Assembly: GCF_000315625.1 (NCBI RefSeq) | Contig: NW_005434563.1 | Location: forward strand, 48,085 to 99,322 | Length of the DNA: 51,238 nt | DNA from: Guillardia theta CCMP2712 | Lineage: Eukaryota > Protista > Cryptophyta | Direction: 5' to 3' | Shown: in pieces, positions 11,174 to 34,814 of the stretch | Layout of the letters: the number at the start of each line of letters is the position of its first letter | Position numbering within the stretch: position 1 is the first letter of the stretch | Position numbers and translations under genes: made by a program | Notes under the pieces: model-generated | Databases searched by the model: none | What the model was told of the DNA's origin: nothing | Seen by the model: only the letters and a program-made list of their open reading frames with translations

Positions 11174-11273
11174 NNNNNNNNNNNNNNNNNNNNNNNNNNN
11201 NNNNNNNNNNNNNNNNNNNNNNNNNNNNNNNNNNNNNNNNNNNNNNNNNNNNNNNNNNNNNNNNNNNNNNNNN
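11174..11273. other. Assembly gap (exactly 100 N, probably an unknown-size placeholder)
   Basis: Ns in sequence. Confidence 1.
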
Positions 11274-11824: not shown

Positions 11825-21317
<9,493 letters not shown>

Positions 21318-27539: not shown

Positions 27540-28090
27540 GTCAGTGCGCCGCGGCATGCGGCACCGAGTCTGCGAGTCTCACTGATATGACTGGCCTAGT
27601 ACGGCCGAGGGCCGCCGTTCAAGTGACGCCCCGGGCCGGTGACCGTACGGTACGGTCCGCCCAGCCGCGCTCCCGAGCCTCGGCCCTGAGGAGTCCGACT
27701 CAGCGGCCCGGGGAGGCCGCGTGACTCAGTACGCCGCCGCCGTCACGCCCGGGACCGTACTGTGGGACTCGCCGGGACTCCGGATTCCCGTAGCCCCGGA
27801 CCTTCCGAAGCCTTCGCCGCCAGGCCGGCAGCCCGACTCGGGGTCGCAGGCTGAGGGACTGGACCGTACCGTCCCGGCGGTAGTACAATTGGTCATCTCA
27901 GGCTCATCCTGAAGTTTCAATGATCACCATGGCTGGCACCGCCTGCGGCAGTGCGACAGTATTCGGGAACAACTTGGCAAGCCTCGCCGAAGTTTATGGC
28001 AATGATTTCACTTCACGTTCAAGGCTGAGTAAAGTCAAAGATCGGGCCTGCCATGCCCGGGCCGGGCCTGGCCGAAGTTGCCAGGCAGTG
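27540..28090. repeat. GC-rich, short-palindrome-rich intergenic island
   Basis: Dense CCGG/GGCC/GTAC/GACTC words, e.g. GACCGTAC-G-GTACGGTC at 27641-27657. Same vocabulary as 39640-40700. Confidence 0.6.
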
Positions 28091-28107
28091 AGAATGGTCC
28101 TGAAAGT

Positions 28108-29906
28108 TCAGATCTCACTGTGAGCAATCGACCGGGATCCGTCCTCCTCCTCCTCCTCCTCCTCCTCCTCCGAATCTGGTCCGCTCCTCAAGAAATGCAC
28201 ATCAACCTCCCCCAGGCTCACCGTCCTCCCGATCCCTCCCTTGTGTGGCCGCACAGAGTTGCTAGTAACCTCTTGCCCCCCGCTGCGACCTGGCTCGGCC
28301 TTGCTGCTGGGGTCTGCAACTCGGCTCACGCAGCTGAACCTGGTCTTGTACGATTGGATCTTGTCTAGAAGCTCAGCATGCTGCTGGGCCCTGCTTGCCA
28401 TCGCCGTGTCGTCGCCGTTCGTGCTGTGAACGTGAGTGTTGAAGCGCCTGATGCGGGGCTTGTTGAGCTTGCTGGGGCCCTCGTGGAGCAAGAGCTCGGA
28501 GCTCGATCTCCCTCCCCTCTTGAATCGCTCCATCTTTTGCTGGGAGGTGGAAACAATGAGGTCTTCGTTCTGGAGGAAAGTTTGGAAGGGGATGAGCTTG
28601 GTGGAGGAGATGGCGATAGGTAGAGAAGCGGAGTCGTTTGCCATCCCTTCCCTCGTCTGATTCCCGTTGGCCAGGTCCCCCTTCACCTCCTCCCTCCTTG
28701 CTGGCTCCTTCTTCTCCTCTTCCGACCTCTCCTCCTCCCTTGATCCGCCGACATCCTGGAGCTTCTGCTGCCTGTTGACAACCTGGTGTGGTCGGGGAGG
28801 GACGGGGGAGGAGGGAAGCGAGGAGGATGGCAGCACCATGGTCATGATCACGTCAAGCTTCTGGTTCAAGATGTCCATGGCTGCGAGCTTGTGGGTGAGG
28901 GAGCGAGACTGATGCTCGACCCGCCGCTCCAGCGTGTCCATACGCGCCATGAGCTGCTTGCCCAAGTCCTGGATCCCCATCTTGTCGCTCCAGTCACTCC
29001 TCTGGGCAGGAGAGTTCCCTCCTCTCTCGATGCTTTCCCCTTCCTCTCCGTCCCCATCTTCGTCCCCGTCCTCGAAGCTCCCACGGTTCTTGACCATGTC
29101 CCTCCACTCCTTGAAAGCAACGTAGGAAGAGGAGCGGAAAAGTTTGCGGAGGATCAATTTCCTGCTCTCCATCTTCTTGTTGCCGACCTTGTTCTCAATG
29201 GAGACCTTGAAGTGGTCGATCGCCGACAAGCTCATCTTGATGGCAAACAGGATTTCCCGCGAGGTGTCGTCCTCCACTGTGTCGATCGAGCTGACCATCT
29301 GTGAGCATCGGGCACGTCAGCTGTAAGGAGGAGCGGACAGACTGTTGGGCAGGGAGCAGCGGAGGTGAAGGAGGTAACACTGGGAGAGGAGAGGAGCCAA
29401 AGAATTGGTCGATGAGTATGGAGGGCAGCAGGCAGGATGGGATAGAGAGTTAGTGAGCGAGGGGGCAGCGGCAGAGGACATGGAGGGAGGACAGAGGGAG
29501 ATGGCCCGGAGGAGAGGTAGGGCAGGGAGGGCTAATGAGGGCCGAAGGAGGGGCAGTGGGTGGGAAGCAGGGAGGAGGAAGGAAAGGAAAGAGGGAGTTG
29601 AGACGCAGGGAGGAGCAAGGACGGAGAGGACACGGGAAGGCCGTCCGGTTCCCACCTTCCTCCTCACGTAGCTGTCCAGCTGCATAAGGATCATCCTCTC
29701 GAAGTTGGACGGGGTCAGCTCGCCGTCCTCGTCCAGCAGGGTCCTCCCCATCGTGAGCATGTCAAAGTCCTCCTGGGTCAGCCGGACGGGGTGCGACAGG
29801 TTCACCTTCCTCAACCCCTCGTTGATCTCCTGCAGGTTCAGAGACCCGTTCTCATCCAGGTCCAGCCTCTGCCAGGGCCGTCAATGCCTGCCCCCATCCT
29901 TTCCCC

Positions 29907-29961
<55 letters not shown>

Positions 29962-32125
29962 TTCACTTCCTCTTCCCCGTCCTCTTGTGCTGCGGATGCA
30001 TGCTTCCACCCTCTTTCCCCCTGACTCCGCGCGTTGCTCCATCCTCCCTCGAAATCCCTTTTGCTCCCCTTCCTTCTCTCTCCCGCCGACTAGAACTCCA
30101 CCTCCCTTTCCCTGTCACCAACCTGCATCTTTCCTGCCACTGATCCTATACACCCCGGCTGCTCCTCCTCCCTCTCCTCCTCGTCCACCCCCCCTTGGGC
30201 TCACCTGGTAGAGCTGGTAGATCCTGTTGGAAAGCTCCTGGATGGTAGCGAACTCAACGAGGCCTGCCAGGAGGGGATCGAGAGGAAGCTGATTGAAGTG
30301 CTTCGAGTTCTGCTTTGCCTGCCGGTGCGTTAGAGGAGACGGAGTAGGGGAAGGGGGAGATATGGAAGGAAGATGGAAACATGGAAAAGACCGATACGCT
30401 GGCTGAGCCCTAGGGGTACAAGGGAGGATGAGGGAAAAAGGATGAGCAGGAGGTAGAAGGCAGGAAGGAAAGGAGGAGGGAGGGATTGCAGAGTTGGGAA
30501 TTGCGAAGAGGAAGCAACTGACAAGTTCAGCCTTGAACTTTGCTCTCCTCTCTTCCTTCTCCCGCTCAACCATGGTGATGAACTCGTCGAGCAGAACAGC
30601 GACAACGATGTTCATGAGCACCTGCAAAGATGTGAGCGAGAAGAAGACAATGAGAGAAAAGAATGCAGAGACACGAGAGAAGCAAGTGGTGTTGGAGGGG
30701 ACGGGAAAGGAAAGGAGTGTTATGATGAGAAGGAAAGAGAAGGACGGGGGAGCAGCAACAACAGAATGTTTTTGACAATGAGAACCGGAAGGCAAGAGAT
30801 GCAGCGCTAGAGAGAAAAGACAAGGAAGGGCATAACAGACAGGAGAGAGGAGGAGAGAAGAAAGGGAAAGAGAGAGGAGAGGGGGAAAGGGAGTGGGGAA
30901 GAGAGGAGGTGTATTGAGCTCAAGAGCGCATACCATGCCAACCAGCAACATGTACGAGACGAAGAAAAATCCAACCTGAGACGATACAACAATCAGGCAG
31001 TGTGCCGATACAAGATGATACGCTTGCTCCTCCTCCTCCTTTTCCTCCTTCTCCCTTCCCTGCCCCCTCCTTACTTGATTCTCTCCTCACCCCCCTTCCT
31101 CCTCGTACTCTACCTTCCCTCTTCCTCCTCGTACTCTTCCTTCTCTCTTCCTCCTCCTCCTCCTCCTCCTCCTTACCCCAAAGTTGAATATCTGAGACTC
31201 GTGCTCGTAATCCAGCACTGAGCGCGCTATGATCGAACCCCAGGCATCGCCCGTGGAGATCTGATACATCTAAGGCAGACAGTTAGAGCCAAACAAGAGG
31301 AGAAGAAGAGAAAGAATGAATGAAGGAGTGAGATGTGACAGAATGGAAGACGACGGGAAAAAGAAGAAATGGAAAAAACATGGAAGACAAGGAAGAAGAT
31401 GGGAAGGAAAATGCAAGAAAGATGGGGGACGGGGGAGGGAGGAGGAAGAGGAAGGAAACAGAAAGGAAGGAAGAAGAAGGGACGGGAAGGAAAATAAGGA
31501 AAGGGGATAAAAGAGGGAAGGCAAGAGAAGAAAATAAGAAGATCACCGTGAACATTGACTTGAGGAAGCCACCGAAGAAGTCAGGTTGTCGTTCGCTGAA
31601 GAGGTTGGTTGCAATGATGGCGTAGATGGATGTGACGAGCGATAGAATGGTGAGAGCGTTGACGACGGGAATGACTTGAATCACTTAGTTAGCCGAGAGG
31701 ACGGGGAAAGGATAGAGAAGGAGGGGGAGCGGGTGAGATGGGATGGAAGAGGAATGGAGCTGAAGGAGGATGCAGGTAGAAGAGATTAGGAGCTTCTATG
31801 AAGCAGGCAGGAAGGATTGAGGTAGACAATGAAACTCAAGGCTGAAAGTACAACATGAGTACAGATGGAAGGGAAGGAAGGGATGCAAGACAGGAGGGGG
31901 AGCACGGGGAGAGCATCGTGAGAAGACAAACCTGAGGCTGCTAGGGCGTTGATAAGGATTCTCAAGGATGCAAGTTTCCTGAGAACGTCACCATCATCAT
32001 CCAGCAGCTCGCATCTCCATCACTTCCTTGCATGCACCATGATCTACATCTCCGCCTCCGAAGTTCATCATCATCTTCGTCATCATCGTTGTCATGATTA
32101 TCATCACCAGCATCACCAGCACAAG

Positions 32126-32169
<44 letters not shown>

Positions 32170-33666
32170 GCATCATCATCATCATCATCGTCGTCGTCGT
32201 CGTCGTCGTCGTCATAACTGCCACCACCAGCATACCGGAATAGCCTGAGCATCTTGAAAACCCTCGCCAACCTCAGCACGCTGATGCCAGTCAACCCATC
32301 GACAAACTGGGAGATGAGGGATAGAACGACCACAACGATATCTGCAGCGCGAGCATGTCAGGCATCTTGGAACCTCTACATGTCACTAGAGTTTGCCTGC
32401 AAGGTTCCATCCATCGAGGAAGAAGGCAACGGAGAAGTGACCAAAGATATTCAGCACCAGATCCTGTTCAGAACCTCTCAGCCCGCGGGCAAACATTCAC
32501 TCTCAGGCAAGCAATGACACTGTAGAGATTGTTTGTGATCTTCCTATGTGGTATGCTTGTCTTCTTATCTTGCAGACAGTACTTCTCTTCGCTTCACTCT
32601 CTGAGCTGACCGTGCTTCGCTCTCCATTCGCCCATTCTCCCTCTCTTTTCCCCTCTCAACATCCTAGCCTGCTCTCGGGTGCTTTCCTTGCCTAATCCAT
32701 CACATCAATATCTTGCTCATCTCCAACTCAATCTGCACCTACGTCTCCATCATCGTCACCACTACCACTACCACTACCACTACCACTACCACTACCACTA
32801 CCACTACCACCATCATCATCTTCATCTTCTTCTTCTTCATCATGTACATCATCTTCGTCATCATACCACTGTGAAGCTGATGTTGAAGAACCATTCCATG
32901 GTGCTGAAGGCTTTGCTCTGGGTTGAATTCGCTTCCGGCAGCACCTGCGCATTCACCAGCGCATTGACGTAGGAGGCGACTATCAGCAGCCCTACAATTC
33001 CCTGACAGATGTTCCCATCGTAGAAATCCCTGACAATCCTTCTCCACTTGGTCAAAGCTGTCGTCTCTGACTTAGCCAACATGTCCGCCTTGCACTGCTC
33101 GATCATCGTCTCCAGGGTATGCACCACATCATCGTAGACAGCCTTGTTCTGCGTTGCCAGCACCGTCGGCCTACCTGAGTTGTGCCCGTCCTCTATGGTG
33201 AAGATGGTGAGGATATGTAGTTCCTCGTCGTCGTCGTCCAGCGCCGGGACGGCCTTGAGCTTCTGCTCCGTCCGCGGCTTGCTGACAACGTTCTTTGACT
33301 TGTACGATTTGGCAGAGAAAACAAGCTTCGTGTTGGGCTCAGCCATGCGGACCTCGCTCGTTCGGTGCACTTGCTCCACCTCGAGCAGCGGGATGTAGTC
33401 CAACATCTCCGTGCTATGCATCTTCCCGAAGCAGATCCTCTCCTCCGTCACGATAACCCGCCGCTTCTGCCATGTGACTCCAATGTCGCTGCATGCGCCG
33501 TCAGCGGAGCCTACCTCCCTCCCCTCCTTCCACACCTCAGTGCCTGCCGTTCGAGCTCGAAGCTTCGGACGAAATCAGCCTCATCTGGCAGTGTCGGCAT
33601 GATGTCTGGTGTTTCCTCAGCCACCCTGGCCTTCGCATGCTTGATGCCGACAATGGCCGAGGCCAT
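28108..33666 (-). CDS. Single-domain 6-TM voltage-gated cation channel (EukCat/BacNav/CatSper-type) with N-terminal PH domain, C-terminal EF-hands and coiled coil
   Basis: PH: FELERQALS|DIGVTWQKRRVIVTEERICFG...LDYIPL...LTIFT...GRPTVLAT. S1-S3: QGIVGLLIVASYVNALV, EWFFNISFTV|DLVLNIFG..FFLDGWNLA|DIVVV. S4: VLRLARVFKMLRLFR|KLASLRILINAL. S5: IYAIIATNLF. Pore: KSMFT|MYQISTGDAWGS. S6: FFFVSYMLLVGM|VLMNIVVAVLLDEF. EF loop: DLDENGSLNLQE. Confidence 0.92.
32060..32215. repeat. Intronic (CAT)n/(CGT)n microsatellite
   Basis: Directly visible, in the intron immediately after the S4 exon. Confidence 0.95.
32757..32810. repeat. Intronic (CCACTA)n microsatellite
   Basis: Directly visible. Confidence 0.9.
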
Positions 33667-33851
33667 CGATCCTGGCCAGGCGCGTCAAATCGAAAGCGAT
33701 TACTGCAGCACATTAGCAATGAAACACTCTCACTCATGTGAGCCATTCTCCATTGCCAAGTCCGCTCATACATCTTGAGTTTACACCACTTTCGTCTAAA
33801 CCACTTCCGTGCCTTTATCTCACTGATCATCTTCCTTCTTCCTTTTCCATT

Positions 33852-34140
33852 CTCCCTGCTCCCTGCTCCCTGCTCCCTGCTCCCTGCTCCCTGCTCCCTG
33901 CTCCCCCCTTCTCCCTGCTCCCTGCTCCCTGCTCCCTTCTCCCTGCTCCCTTCTCCTTGCTCAATGCTCCCTTCTCCTTGCTCCCTGCTCCCTGCTCCCT
34001 GCTCCCTGCTCCCTTGCTCCCTGCTCCCTTCTCCTTGCTGCCTGCTGCCTGCTCCCTTCTCCCTGCTCCCTGCTCCCTGCTCCCTGCTCCCTGCTCCCTG
34101 CTCCCTGCTCCCTGCTCCCTGCTCCCTGCTCCCTGCTCCT
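33852..34140. repeat. Imperfect (CTCCCTG)n array upstream of the channel gene (possibly in a 5' intron)
   Basis: Directly visible heptamer array. Confidence 0.9.
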
Positions 34141-34814
34141 TTCACTCTTTTCTCCTCGTTGCGCTTCACTCGCACACCATTTTTCCCTTCCCCATTCTCC
34201 CTGGCCGACGCTTGTCGAGCTCATTGACTGGCATAATTCCATCTGCCATACAAAGTTGCGTCGCATGTTACTACTAAGAAGTGACCATTTTTTTTAAAAC
34301 TTCCTCACGACCCCACCCCAAATGGCCCACCCCACCTGGCCGCCCACCCCACCCTAGGCTGCCAGCGTACTTGGCGTCCCAAAGTTCCGCCGGGCTCCCT
34401 GAACGCGCAGATGAGGGGCCCTGGGTTATTTACCTTGAGGAGATAAGGGCTCACTCATCCACCAGAGTACCCCCTTGCGAGTCACTTCCGAATCCCAACT
34501 TCCTACCCACCCACACCCTACCCCCTACCCCCTACAGTAGGGCTCTTGGACCCTGACCCCGGCGGTCAACAAGGTTTCACGGTACCCCTACCCGGTAGTT
34601 TCTCTCTTTGAAGCATGACGCCTTCCCTTGACAGCAAGTAAACTTCCGCAGCAATCAGCCAGACCTGGTAGTACCCGGTTGTCTCCTCTCCAAAGTACCC
34701 GTACCACTAAGTGATAAAATAACTATTTTATGACCGTTATTTGGCAGTTTTCTTAATTAGCTTCACCATTTTATTAATCAGTAGTGAGCTGAAAGACTTT
34801 CACTCTCAACCGCC

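Follow-up and report, generated by a model that had tools for sequence, protein, structure and literature searches.

Algal single-domain voltage-gated channels are recent discoveries, and the only well-studied ones related to the gene described here, EukCatA and EhEUKCATB1/NaVEh, have no lipid-binding module. EhEUKCATB1 of Emiliania huxleyi conducts Na+ selectively and with fast kinetics, carries an EF-hand pair at its C-terminus and has T-G-E-S-W-S-E as its filter (Helliwell 2020), and its E305D mutant conducts Ca2+ and Ba2+. The same channel, solved as NaVEh (PDB 7x5v, 8j7f, 8j7m), has 542 residues and consists of an N-helix, S1-S6 and an EF-hand-like domain, with no pleckstrin homology (PH) domain (Zhang 2022, PMC9114117). 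Residues 2-13 of NaVEh, which form two hydrophobic turns followed by a basic cluster, plug the open gate, and their deletion abolishes fast inactivation (PMC9114117). The published surveys of these channels took in the genome of the cryptophyte Guillardia theta, and cryptophyte channels were assigned to EukCatB (clade B, Helliwell et al. 2019). In the present study we analyzed a stretch of 51,238 nucleotides (nt) of contig NW_005434563.1 of Guillardia theta CCMP2712, hereafter called the window, which carries on its minus strand, at positions 28108-33666, a gene of this kind with a PH domain in front of the channel. We think it rather probable that the product of this locus, 953 residues long, is one subunit of a tetrameric cation channel that is activated by depolarisation and belongs to the algal single-domain clade of NaVEh/EhEUKCATB1, and that would be Ca2+-permeable, with a ball at the N-terminus, a ligand for the PH domain and a role for the EF-hands.

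The gene model was built by hand and checked by a script. It consists of 12 exons with 2862 nt in total, that is, 953 codons, and contains no internal stop. The domains follow one another in the order of N-helix, spacer, PH domain, S0-S6, EF-hand pair, heptad helix and disordered tail; their coordinates are collected in Table 1. Ten introns have GT-AG splice sites and one has GC-AG (intron 3, 55 nt, 32342-32396). When 10 homologous proteins were compared with positions 28000-33800 by local tblastn, exons 2-7 and 9-11 were matched in the expected order and frames. Exon 8 (42 nt) is below the length required by tblastn, and its basis is the reading frame together with a by-eye resemblance to the sequence F-F-V-S-Y of the homologues. 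Intron 1 (47 nt, 33489-33535) interrupts the PH domain; it lies at the same position in paralogous loci, and it is supported by the W-x-x-R spacing from beta1 to beta2, which agrees with that of 77 relatives. The start codon and the first exon are kept in paralogues, and they agree with the N-termini of complete transcripts. The gene region is free of assembly gaps. All searches were made per exon or with the sequences of relatives. Pfam searches with single exons or open reading frames (ORFs) of this gene gave almost no matches, because the introns split the domains.

The original prediction, made from the sequence before the present analysis, had read the locus as one six-transmembrane (6-TM) repeat with a five-charge S4, and this was found. 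S4 reads R-L-A-R-V-F-K-M-L-R-L-F-R at 32273-32236, with the codon of the last Arg completed at 31978, so that five charges stand at every third position. The homologues score 1e-27 to 1e-42 against Ion_trans (PF00520), whereas the single exons of this gene reached E 0.011 at best; all the channel segments of the gene align to these Ion_trans-scoring homologues. The S0-S2 helices of the AlphaFold2 model of exon 2 (residues 144-157, 159-182 and 189-206) have values of more than 90 in the predicted local distance difference test (pLDDT), and a family profile made from the 74-sequence alignment A1 aligns the S0-S2 stretch to the NaVEh chains 8j7f and 7x5v with E of about 1e-8. Among the solved structures matched by the homologue P0005, NaVEh was the best single-domain channel, with 98-103 bits, compared with about 66 bits for NavAb chimeras and NavRh. 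No CatSper chain was among the 60 best solved matches shown for P0005.

The gene contains a single 6-TM repeat. A second repeat upstream would have made the gene a two-pore channel (TPC), but tblastn across the window gave no channel-like match outside 28108-33666. Since there is no other channel-like exon in the window, the gene is read as a single repeat, and a TPC or another multi-repeat channel is ruled out.

The selectivity filter is T-G-D-A-W (31254-31240), which continues as T-G-D-A-W-G-S, with Asp378 at the high-field-strength position. Nearly all of the PH-bearing relatives have T-G-D-x-W. The filter of this gene does not match the T-G-E-S-W-S-E of the Na+-selective coccolithophore EukCatB, which has Glu at position 0. 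By analogy with EhEUKCATB1, in which a change from Glu to Asp had exactly this effect, the Asp filter would make the pore Ca2+-permeable rather than Na+-selective.

The PH-like fold, which had been predicted at about 33090-33560, was found from about 33558 to 33068. Exon 2, whose 207 residues include the PH domain from beta2, the linker, S1 and the start of S2, has 194 relatives (E <= 0.001) among 1.84 billion cluster representatives, and 91 of these 194 span the PH domain, the linker and S1 together. Given this number of relatives, the features of the gene are, on sequence comparison, far beyond what chance would produce. The AlphaFold2 model of exon 2, which was made with alignment A1, has a mean pLDDT of 86 and shows six strands and a 26-residue C-terminal helix. 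Of the seven-stranded PH sandwich, exon 2 as modelled thus contains six strands and the helix, and beta1 is in exon 1; the pLDDT is >90 outside one loop. The 50 best Foldseek matches of the model were all PH, PTB or FERM-F3 folds, with E-values of just 0.007-0.08. VIA-align gave a Z value of 11.8 for the PH domain of GRK2, the root-mean-square deviation (rmsd) being 2.0 A over 92 residues, and for the PH domains of Akt1, TAPP1, DAPP1, ARAP3, Avo1 and GRK2 as a whole it gave Z values of 11-11.8 with an rmsd of about 2 A over 85-95 residues. The A1 profile also matched the solved PH domains 1v89 and 1eaz with E 1.6e-4. Two homologues, P0114 (32.9 bits) and P0033 (32.5 bits), score above the gathering threshold of Pfam PF00169 (25.1 bits), and long relatives show PH, Ion_trans and EF-hand together in Pfam. 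On this evidence the N-terminal region is modelled as a PH fold.

In the model the C-terminal helix of the PH domain continues into the pre-S1 helix and S1. Because this helix runs straight into the pre-S1 helix, the PH domain would be held at the inner face of the membrane, under the voltage sensor and within the chain. Of the residues in the motif G-x-N-S-G-R, G105 never varies among the 74 sequences of alignment A1, and G101 and R106 are kept in at least 90% of them. In this copy beta1 bears an Arg, and the start of beta2 reads K-R-R. The domain would probably bind an anionic ligand, with an inner-leaflet phosphoinositide as the likeliest one, by means of the conserved basic residues of beta1 and beta2 and the G-x-N-S-G-R hairpin. 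Between the fourth modelled strand and the next one, there is a low-confidence loop of 47 residues (residues about 88-134; window 33220-33360), which is rich in Lys and Ser, then rich in Asp and Glu, and ends in D-D-D-D-E-E. This loop could be a phosphorylation loop or a membrane-contact loop. In P0001, the Hanusia phi orthologue, its sequence is well kept although it is predicted to be disordered.

The architecture proposed earlier was borne out, but a ball-like helix at the extreme N-terminus had been missed. Residues 2-8, A-S-A-I-V-G-I, are small or hydrophobic and form two turns, and K9, H10, K12 and R14 come after them. Many relatives begin in a similar way, for example with M-A-A-A, four hydrophobic residues and then K or R. 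From the description of NaVEh we took the rule that residues 2-7 should be small or hydrophobic and that at least two K/R should occur within residues 7-16. Among the relatives starting with Met, 29 of the 81 PH-bearing and 15 of the 36 PH-less sequences pass this rule, as compared with 0.9% of internal Met windows, and this gene passes as well. These counts are lower bounds, because many database entries are truncated. Six paralogous loci (L002-L006, L008) have also kept a similar first exon at a distance of 180-200 nt upstream of the PH exon, and the position of the intron is unchanged. As in NaVEh, an acidic stretch, D-E-F...E-R-E-K-E-E, comes after the end of S6 (exon 9). Comparison of exon 1 and exon 9 with solved structures gave chance-level matches at most. 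By analogy with NaVEh, the first 14 residues would act as a ball that plugs the open gate and causes fast inactivation of the N-type, and the acidic stretch after S6 would be the docking site. As the ball-like helix stands at the N-terminus, before the PH domain, the PH domain is probably located within the chain of a ball-and-chain inactivation gate, between the ball and the voltage sensor.

Behind the pore, the canonical EF loop, the degenerate partner loop and the terminal coiled coil that had been predicted could all be recognized. Loop 1, D-L-D-E-N-G-S-L-N-L-Q-E (29862-29827), is an exact match to PROSITE PS00018, whereas loop 2, D-E-D-G-E-L-T-P-S-N-F-E (29733-29698), fails this pattern at position 6. 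Across the family loop 1 is conserved, being canonical in 12 of 31 relatives, and loop 2 is degenerate throughout. Exon 11 folds as an EF-hand pair in the AlphaFold2 model made with 18 relatives (pLDDT 93.5). The 50 best Foldseek matches of the 71-residue EF model were all EF-hand proteins (TM score 0.4-0.65, rmsd 2.5-5 A), with weak E-values of at least 0.06. Pfam EF-hand_1 gave 16.6 bits on exon 11 alone, which is below the gathering threshold. EF loop 1 may sense the incoming Ca2+ and feed back on gating. The terminal heptad helix, L-M-A-R-M-D-T-L-E-R-R-V-E..., begins at 28953. The tail encoded by exon 12 had no match among proteins of 218-693 residues, a comparison that is uninformative on longer relatives.

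Many paralogues in Guillardia theta share the layout, as do other cryptophytes. The genome of Guillardia theta contains 32 matches to exon 2, and in at least 12 of them the PH domain and S1 lie within a single exon. The Guillardia theta CCMP2712 protein GUITHDRAFT_107287 agrees at 100% identity with the genome that the window comes from. The same arrangement was seen in relatives from Hanusia phi, Hemiselmis andersenii, Cryptomonas curvata and the Guillardia theta transcriptome. The Hanusia phi orthologue P0001 is 74% identical and is derived from a transcriptome, as is one Guillardia theta paralogue. Two of the cryptophyte relatives carry the label 'PH domain-containing protein' in UniProt. 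A protein of 1958 residues with 11 matched stretches (P0013) was rejected as a spurious match, since it is a bacterial Ig/cadherin-repeat protein. In an environmental relative, P0219, ubiquitin-family Pfam domains (PF00240, PF11976) accompany the channel domain, a further uncommon fusion within this clade.

A quick maximum-likelihood tree was made from 66 channel cores of relatives, with this gene itself and the reference EukCatA/C, BacNav and CatSper channels standing outside the set. In this tree the algal channels, that is, the PH-bearing ones and a PH-less clade that includes the T-G-E-S-W-S-E channels, form one group with a value of 100 in the Shimodaira-Hasegawa-like approximate likelihood ratio test (SH-aLRT). 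The PH-bearing sequences form a grade around the PH-less clade, which contains T-G-E-S-W-S-E, prasinophyte and two-repeat channels; the backbone is weak, and some of the sequences counted as PH-less are truncated. Several PH-less relatives, namely P0184 (Cymbomonas tetramitiformis CYMTET_25237), P0147, P0183, P0188, P0189, P0191 and P0192, have two 6-TM repeats within one protein. Each of these repeats has a T-x-D-x-W filter of its own, and the ball-like N-terminus is often present as well. In the tree P0147 and P0188 each have their two repeats paired with one another; the repeats of P0189 and P0192 fall into one small group, and the P0184 repeats are placed close to each other. This branching suggests that two-repeat channels may have arisen within this algal clade, apart from the classical TPCs.

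Several observations weigh against the interpretation given above. When this copy alone was searched, Pfam gave no PH match at E <= 0.1. The phosphoinositide motif K-Xn-(K/R)-X-R is loosely kept: among 77 relatives the beta2 Arg is common, and the rest varies. At the position of the Trp in the family-consensus PH helix, this copy has Val, and the Hanusia phi orthologue shares the Val. The basic cluster of the N-helix is weak in this copy, which has three Lys/Arg and one His and then two Glu. Under a stricter ball rule based on net charge, 23 of the 81 pass and this copy fails, because the two Glu come after its basic residues; moreover, both ball rules were formulated after the sequences had been seen. 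As for the EF-hands, a later paper on NaVEh reported that Ca2+ had a negligible effect on its function and structure, and for this reason regulation by the EF-hand is not established even in NaVEh. In the run search for this copy, no RNA run was among the listed holders. A complex prediction made with four copies of the pore and the N-terminal 40 residues of a Hemiselmis homologue had a score of 0.00; we list it here, but it is no evidence either way.

Other explanations were considered as well. The PH domain could be a protein-binding or targeting module, such as a flagellar, ejectosome or cortical scaffold anchor, or it could bind a part of the channel such as the EF pair, rather than being a lipid sensor for gating. 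This is possible, if unlikely. It would agree with the fact that the best structural matches include the protein-binding PH, PTB and FERM-F3 domains of GRK2 (PH domain with G-beta-gamma), CCM2 and IRS-1 (PTB), with the partial conservation of the canonical phosphoinositide motif, and with the family-specific nature of G-x-N-S-G-R, the most conserved PH motif, which has no known role in lipid binding. However, in classical PH domains the site for lipid head groups lies near the start of beta2 and the last hairpin, and it is near these two places that the Arg of beta2, which is in the family consensus, and the hairpin Arg, which is at least 90% conserved, are located. The continuity of the PH helix with the pre-S1 helix in the model also means that the domain must lie at the membrane. 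A related question is whether four identical subunits assemble. The original prediction spoke of a homotetramer, which is not a given in a genome with dozens of paralogues, and that same number of paralogues favors heterotetramers of the kind formed by the CatSper subunits. We regard heterotetramers as unlikely, because the closest characterised relatives (EhEUKCATB1/NaVEh, SaEUKCATB1 and BacNav) act as homotetramers, and because this copy has a complete sensor, filter and gate and needs no partner on sequence grounds.

The gene might, furthermore, encode a Na+-selective fast channel like the coccolithophore EukCatB, with which it shares the clade and, more exactly with the T-G-E-S-W-S-E channels, the T-G-x-x-W frame and the N-helix. 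We consider this improbable, since the filter has Asp instead of Glu and the Ser that follows is absent (T-G-D-A-W-G-S), since E305D by itself gave EhEUKCATB1 permeability to Ca2+ and Ba2+, and since both Na+ and Ca2+ pass through the diatom EukCatA channels that have Asp. It is very improbable, in our opinion, that the gene is a silent or decaying member of an expanded family. Such an idea could draw on the result of the RNA run search, on the stop codons in some paralogous loci, and on the loss of the PH helix Trp in this copy. Against it, the 12 exons are in frame over 953 codons with usable splice sites, all of the nearly invariant family positions that were checked are kept, and the Hanusia phi orthologue, from a transcriptome and 74% identical, has the same change of Trp to Val. 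We keep to the reading of the gene as a subunit of a depolarisation-activated channel with a Ca2+-permeable pore.

If that reading is correct, the channel might work as follows. Depolarisation would open the tetrameric pore, and the Asp filter would let Ca2+ pass; after this, the N-helix would block the open gate. The helix leading into pre-S1 would keep the PH domain at the inner face of the membrane, and there the domain would bind an anionic ligand, likeliest a phosphoinositide, and so adjust either voltage sensing or how available the ball is. EF loop 1 would report the Ca2+ that enters. We speculate, as a quite tentative and rather doubtful extension, that the folded PH domain in the chain makes N-type inactivation or voltage sensing depend on inner-leaflet phosphoinositides, so that the channel would be a Ca2+-permeable coincidence detector of lipid, voltage and Ca2+, of which cryptophytes would possess dozens of variants.

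Table 1. Features of the Guillardia theta gene, with positions in the window
Feature	Position	Strand	Basis
Exon 1: start codon, ball-like N-helix, spacer with P-x-x-D/E motif, PH beta1; ends in phase 2	33536..33666	-	Sequence, frame check, paralogues
Candidate inactivation ball (N-helix), residues 1-14, M-A-S-A-I-V-G-I-K-H-A-K-A-R	33625..33666	-	NaVEh N-helix description, motif counts
PH domain, residues ~37-185, split by intron 1	33068..33558	-	AlphaFold2, Foldseek, VIA-align, profile search
G-H-N-S-G-R, most conserved PH motif of the family (G-x-N-S-G-R), hairpin before last strand	33170..33187	-	Alignment A1, DSSP of the model
End of exon 2: pre-S1 (S0) helix, S1, start of S2	32867..33067	-	Model helices, profile match to NaVEh
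Exon 3: end of S2 to start of S3 (...F-F-L-D-G-W-N-L-A), GC donor	32397..32463	-	tblastn of P0011, splice table
Exon 4: S3 and S4	32236..32341	-	Sequence, tblastn; Pfam Ion_trans E 0.011 on lone ORF
Exon 5: S4-S5 linker, K-L-A-S-L-R-I-L-I-N-A-L-A-A-S	31932..31978	-	tblastn of P0005 and P0011, frame check
Exon 6: S5	31547..31683	-	Nine homologues matched by tblastn at 45-55% identity
Exon 7: pore helix and filter T-G-D-A-W (31254-31240)	31177..31269	-	Sequence, tblastn, frame check
Exon 8: first half of S6	30934..30975	-	Sequence and frame
Exon 9: end of S6 and acidic post-gate stretch (...A-V-L-L-D-E-F-I-T-M-V-E-R-E-K-E-E...)	30523..30621	-	tblastn, 60-94% identity
Exon 10: conserved linker L-D-P-L-L, helix leading into EF-hand 1	30205..30318	-	tblastn; L-D-P motif in 31 relatives
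Exon 11: EF-hand pair	29656..29868	-	PS00018, AlphaFold2, Foldseek
Exon 12: 396 codons and stop; conserved post-EF helix, heptad (coiled-coil-like) helix 28953 to ~28834, low-complexity tail	28108..29298	-	Open frame; by-eye resemblance to P0033 and P0114

Repeats and gaps were also seen in the window. A microsatellite of the (GGGAGCA)n type occupies 33830-34150, directly upstream of the start codon. Intron 4 (at 32100-32235) and intron 2 (at 32740-32860) contain long tri- and hexanucleotide microsatellites, (GAT/GAC)n and (GGTAGT)n, which give rise to long spurious open frames on both strands. The N-runs at 2439-2679, 11174-11273 and 18584-19546, all outside the gene, are assembly gaps, and they account for the low-GC blocks in the composition profile of the window.

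The gene points to a conserved and much expanded subfamily with a PH domain placed after a probable ball and ahead of the voltage sensor, and with a filter from which Ca2+ entry would be expected. It offers a directly testable case of lipid control built into a voltage-gated channel, and it is a likely molecular basis for the excitability and rapid behaviour of cryptophytes. It may also serve as a compact natural scaffold for channel engineering, and the size of the construct suits the pipeline of HEK293 cells and cryo-electron microscopy that was used for NaVEh.

The original prediction also knew of no functionally characterised channel with this layout. This stands for the PH fusion: in full-text literature searches, no paper that pairs EukCat with pleckstrin or 'PH domain' turned up, and a full-text search for Guillardia with voltage-gated and pleckstrin homology gave an unrelated match and none on such a channel. 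It does not stand for a channel with a C-terminal EF-hand, which is known as EhEUKCATB1/NaVEh. The combination of channel and EF-hand is already characterised and solved in NaVEh, and the PH fusion alone is new.

NaVEh, like this gene, is an algal channel with a single 6-TM repeat, the T-G-x-x-W frame, a pre-S1 helix, the same motifs in S1-S2, an N-helix that is first hydrophobic and then basic, and an EF-hand or EF-hand-like pair. In NaVEh, however, the N-helix is followed directly by a short chain, the filter has Glu, and the basic cluster consists of five consecutive Arg, whereas in this gene the filter has Asp, the chain includes a PH domain of about 150 residues, one EF loop is canonical, and a further 280 residues form an extra tail. 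The bacterial channels NaChBac, NavAb and NavRh resemble it in having one 6-TM repeat, an expected four-fold assembly, a T-x-E/D-x-W filter and, in many cases, a C-terminal helical bundle. They differ in that they lack a ball, a PH domain and an EF-hand and have slower kinetics, and they score lower than NaVEh (about 60-67 bits as against 98-103). Diatom EukCatA, which we compared by way of the literature, is also an algal single-domain voltage-gated channel; in some members filter position 0 is Asp, and these let Na+ as well as Ca2+ through and drive depolarisation-activated Ca2+ signals, but EukCatA forms a separate clade in the published trees, and no PH domain is reported for it. CatSper has single-repeat subunits with a T-x-D-x-W filter and conducts Ca2+. 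It exists as an obligate heterotetramer, includes many auxiliary subunits and depends weakly on voltage. The ball-and-chain of Shaker-type K+ channels and MthK has, as here, a hydrophobic tip and positive charges at the extreme N-terminus and is tethered by a chain. Membrane phosphoinositides can reportedly restrain the ball of A-type K+ channels, and this would be the closest precedent for lipid-controlled N-type inactivation. These channels, however, have a disordered chain, and the ball itself is the target of the lipid, whereas in the gene described here a folded PH domain stands in the chain.

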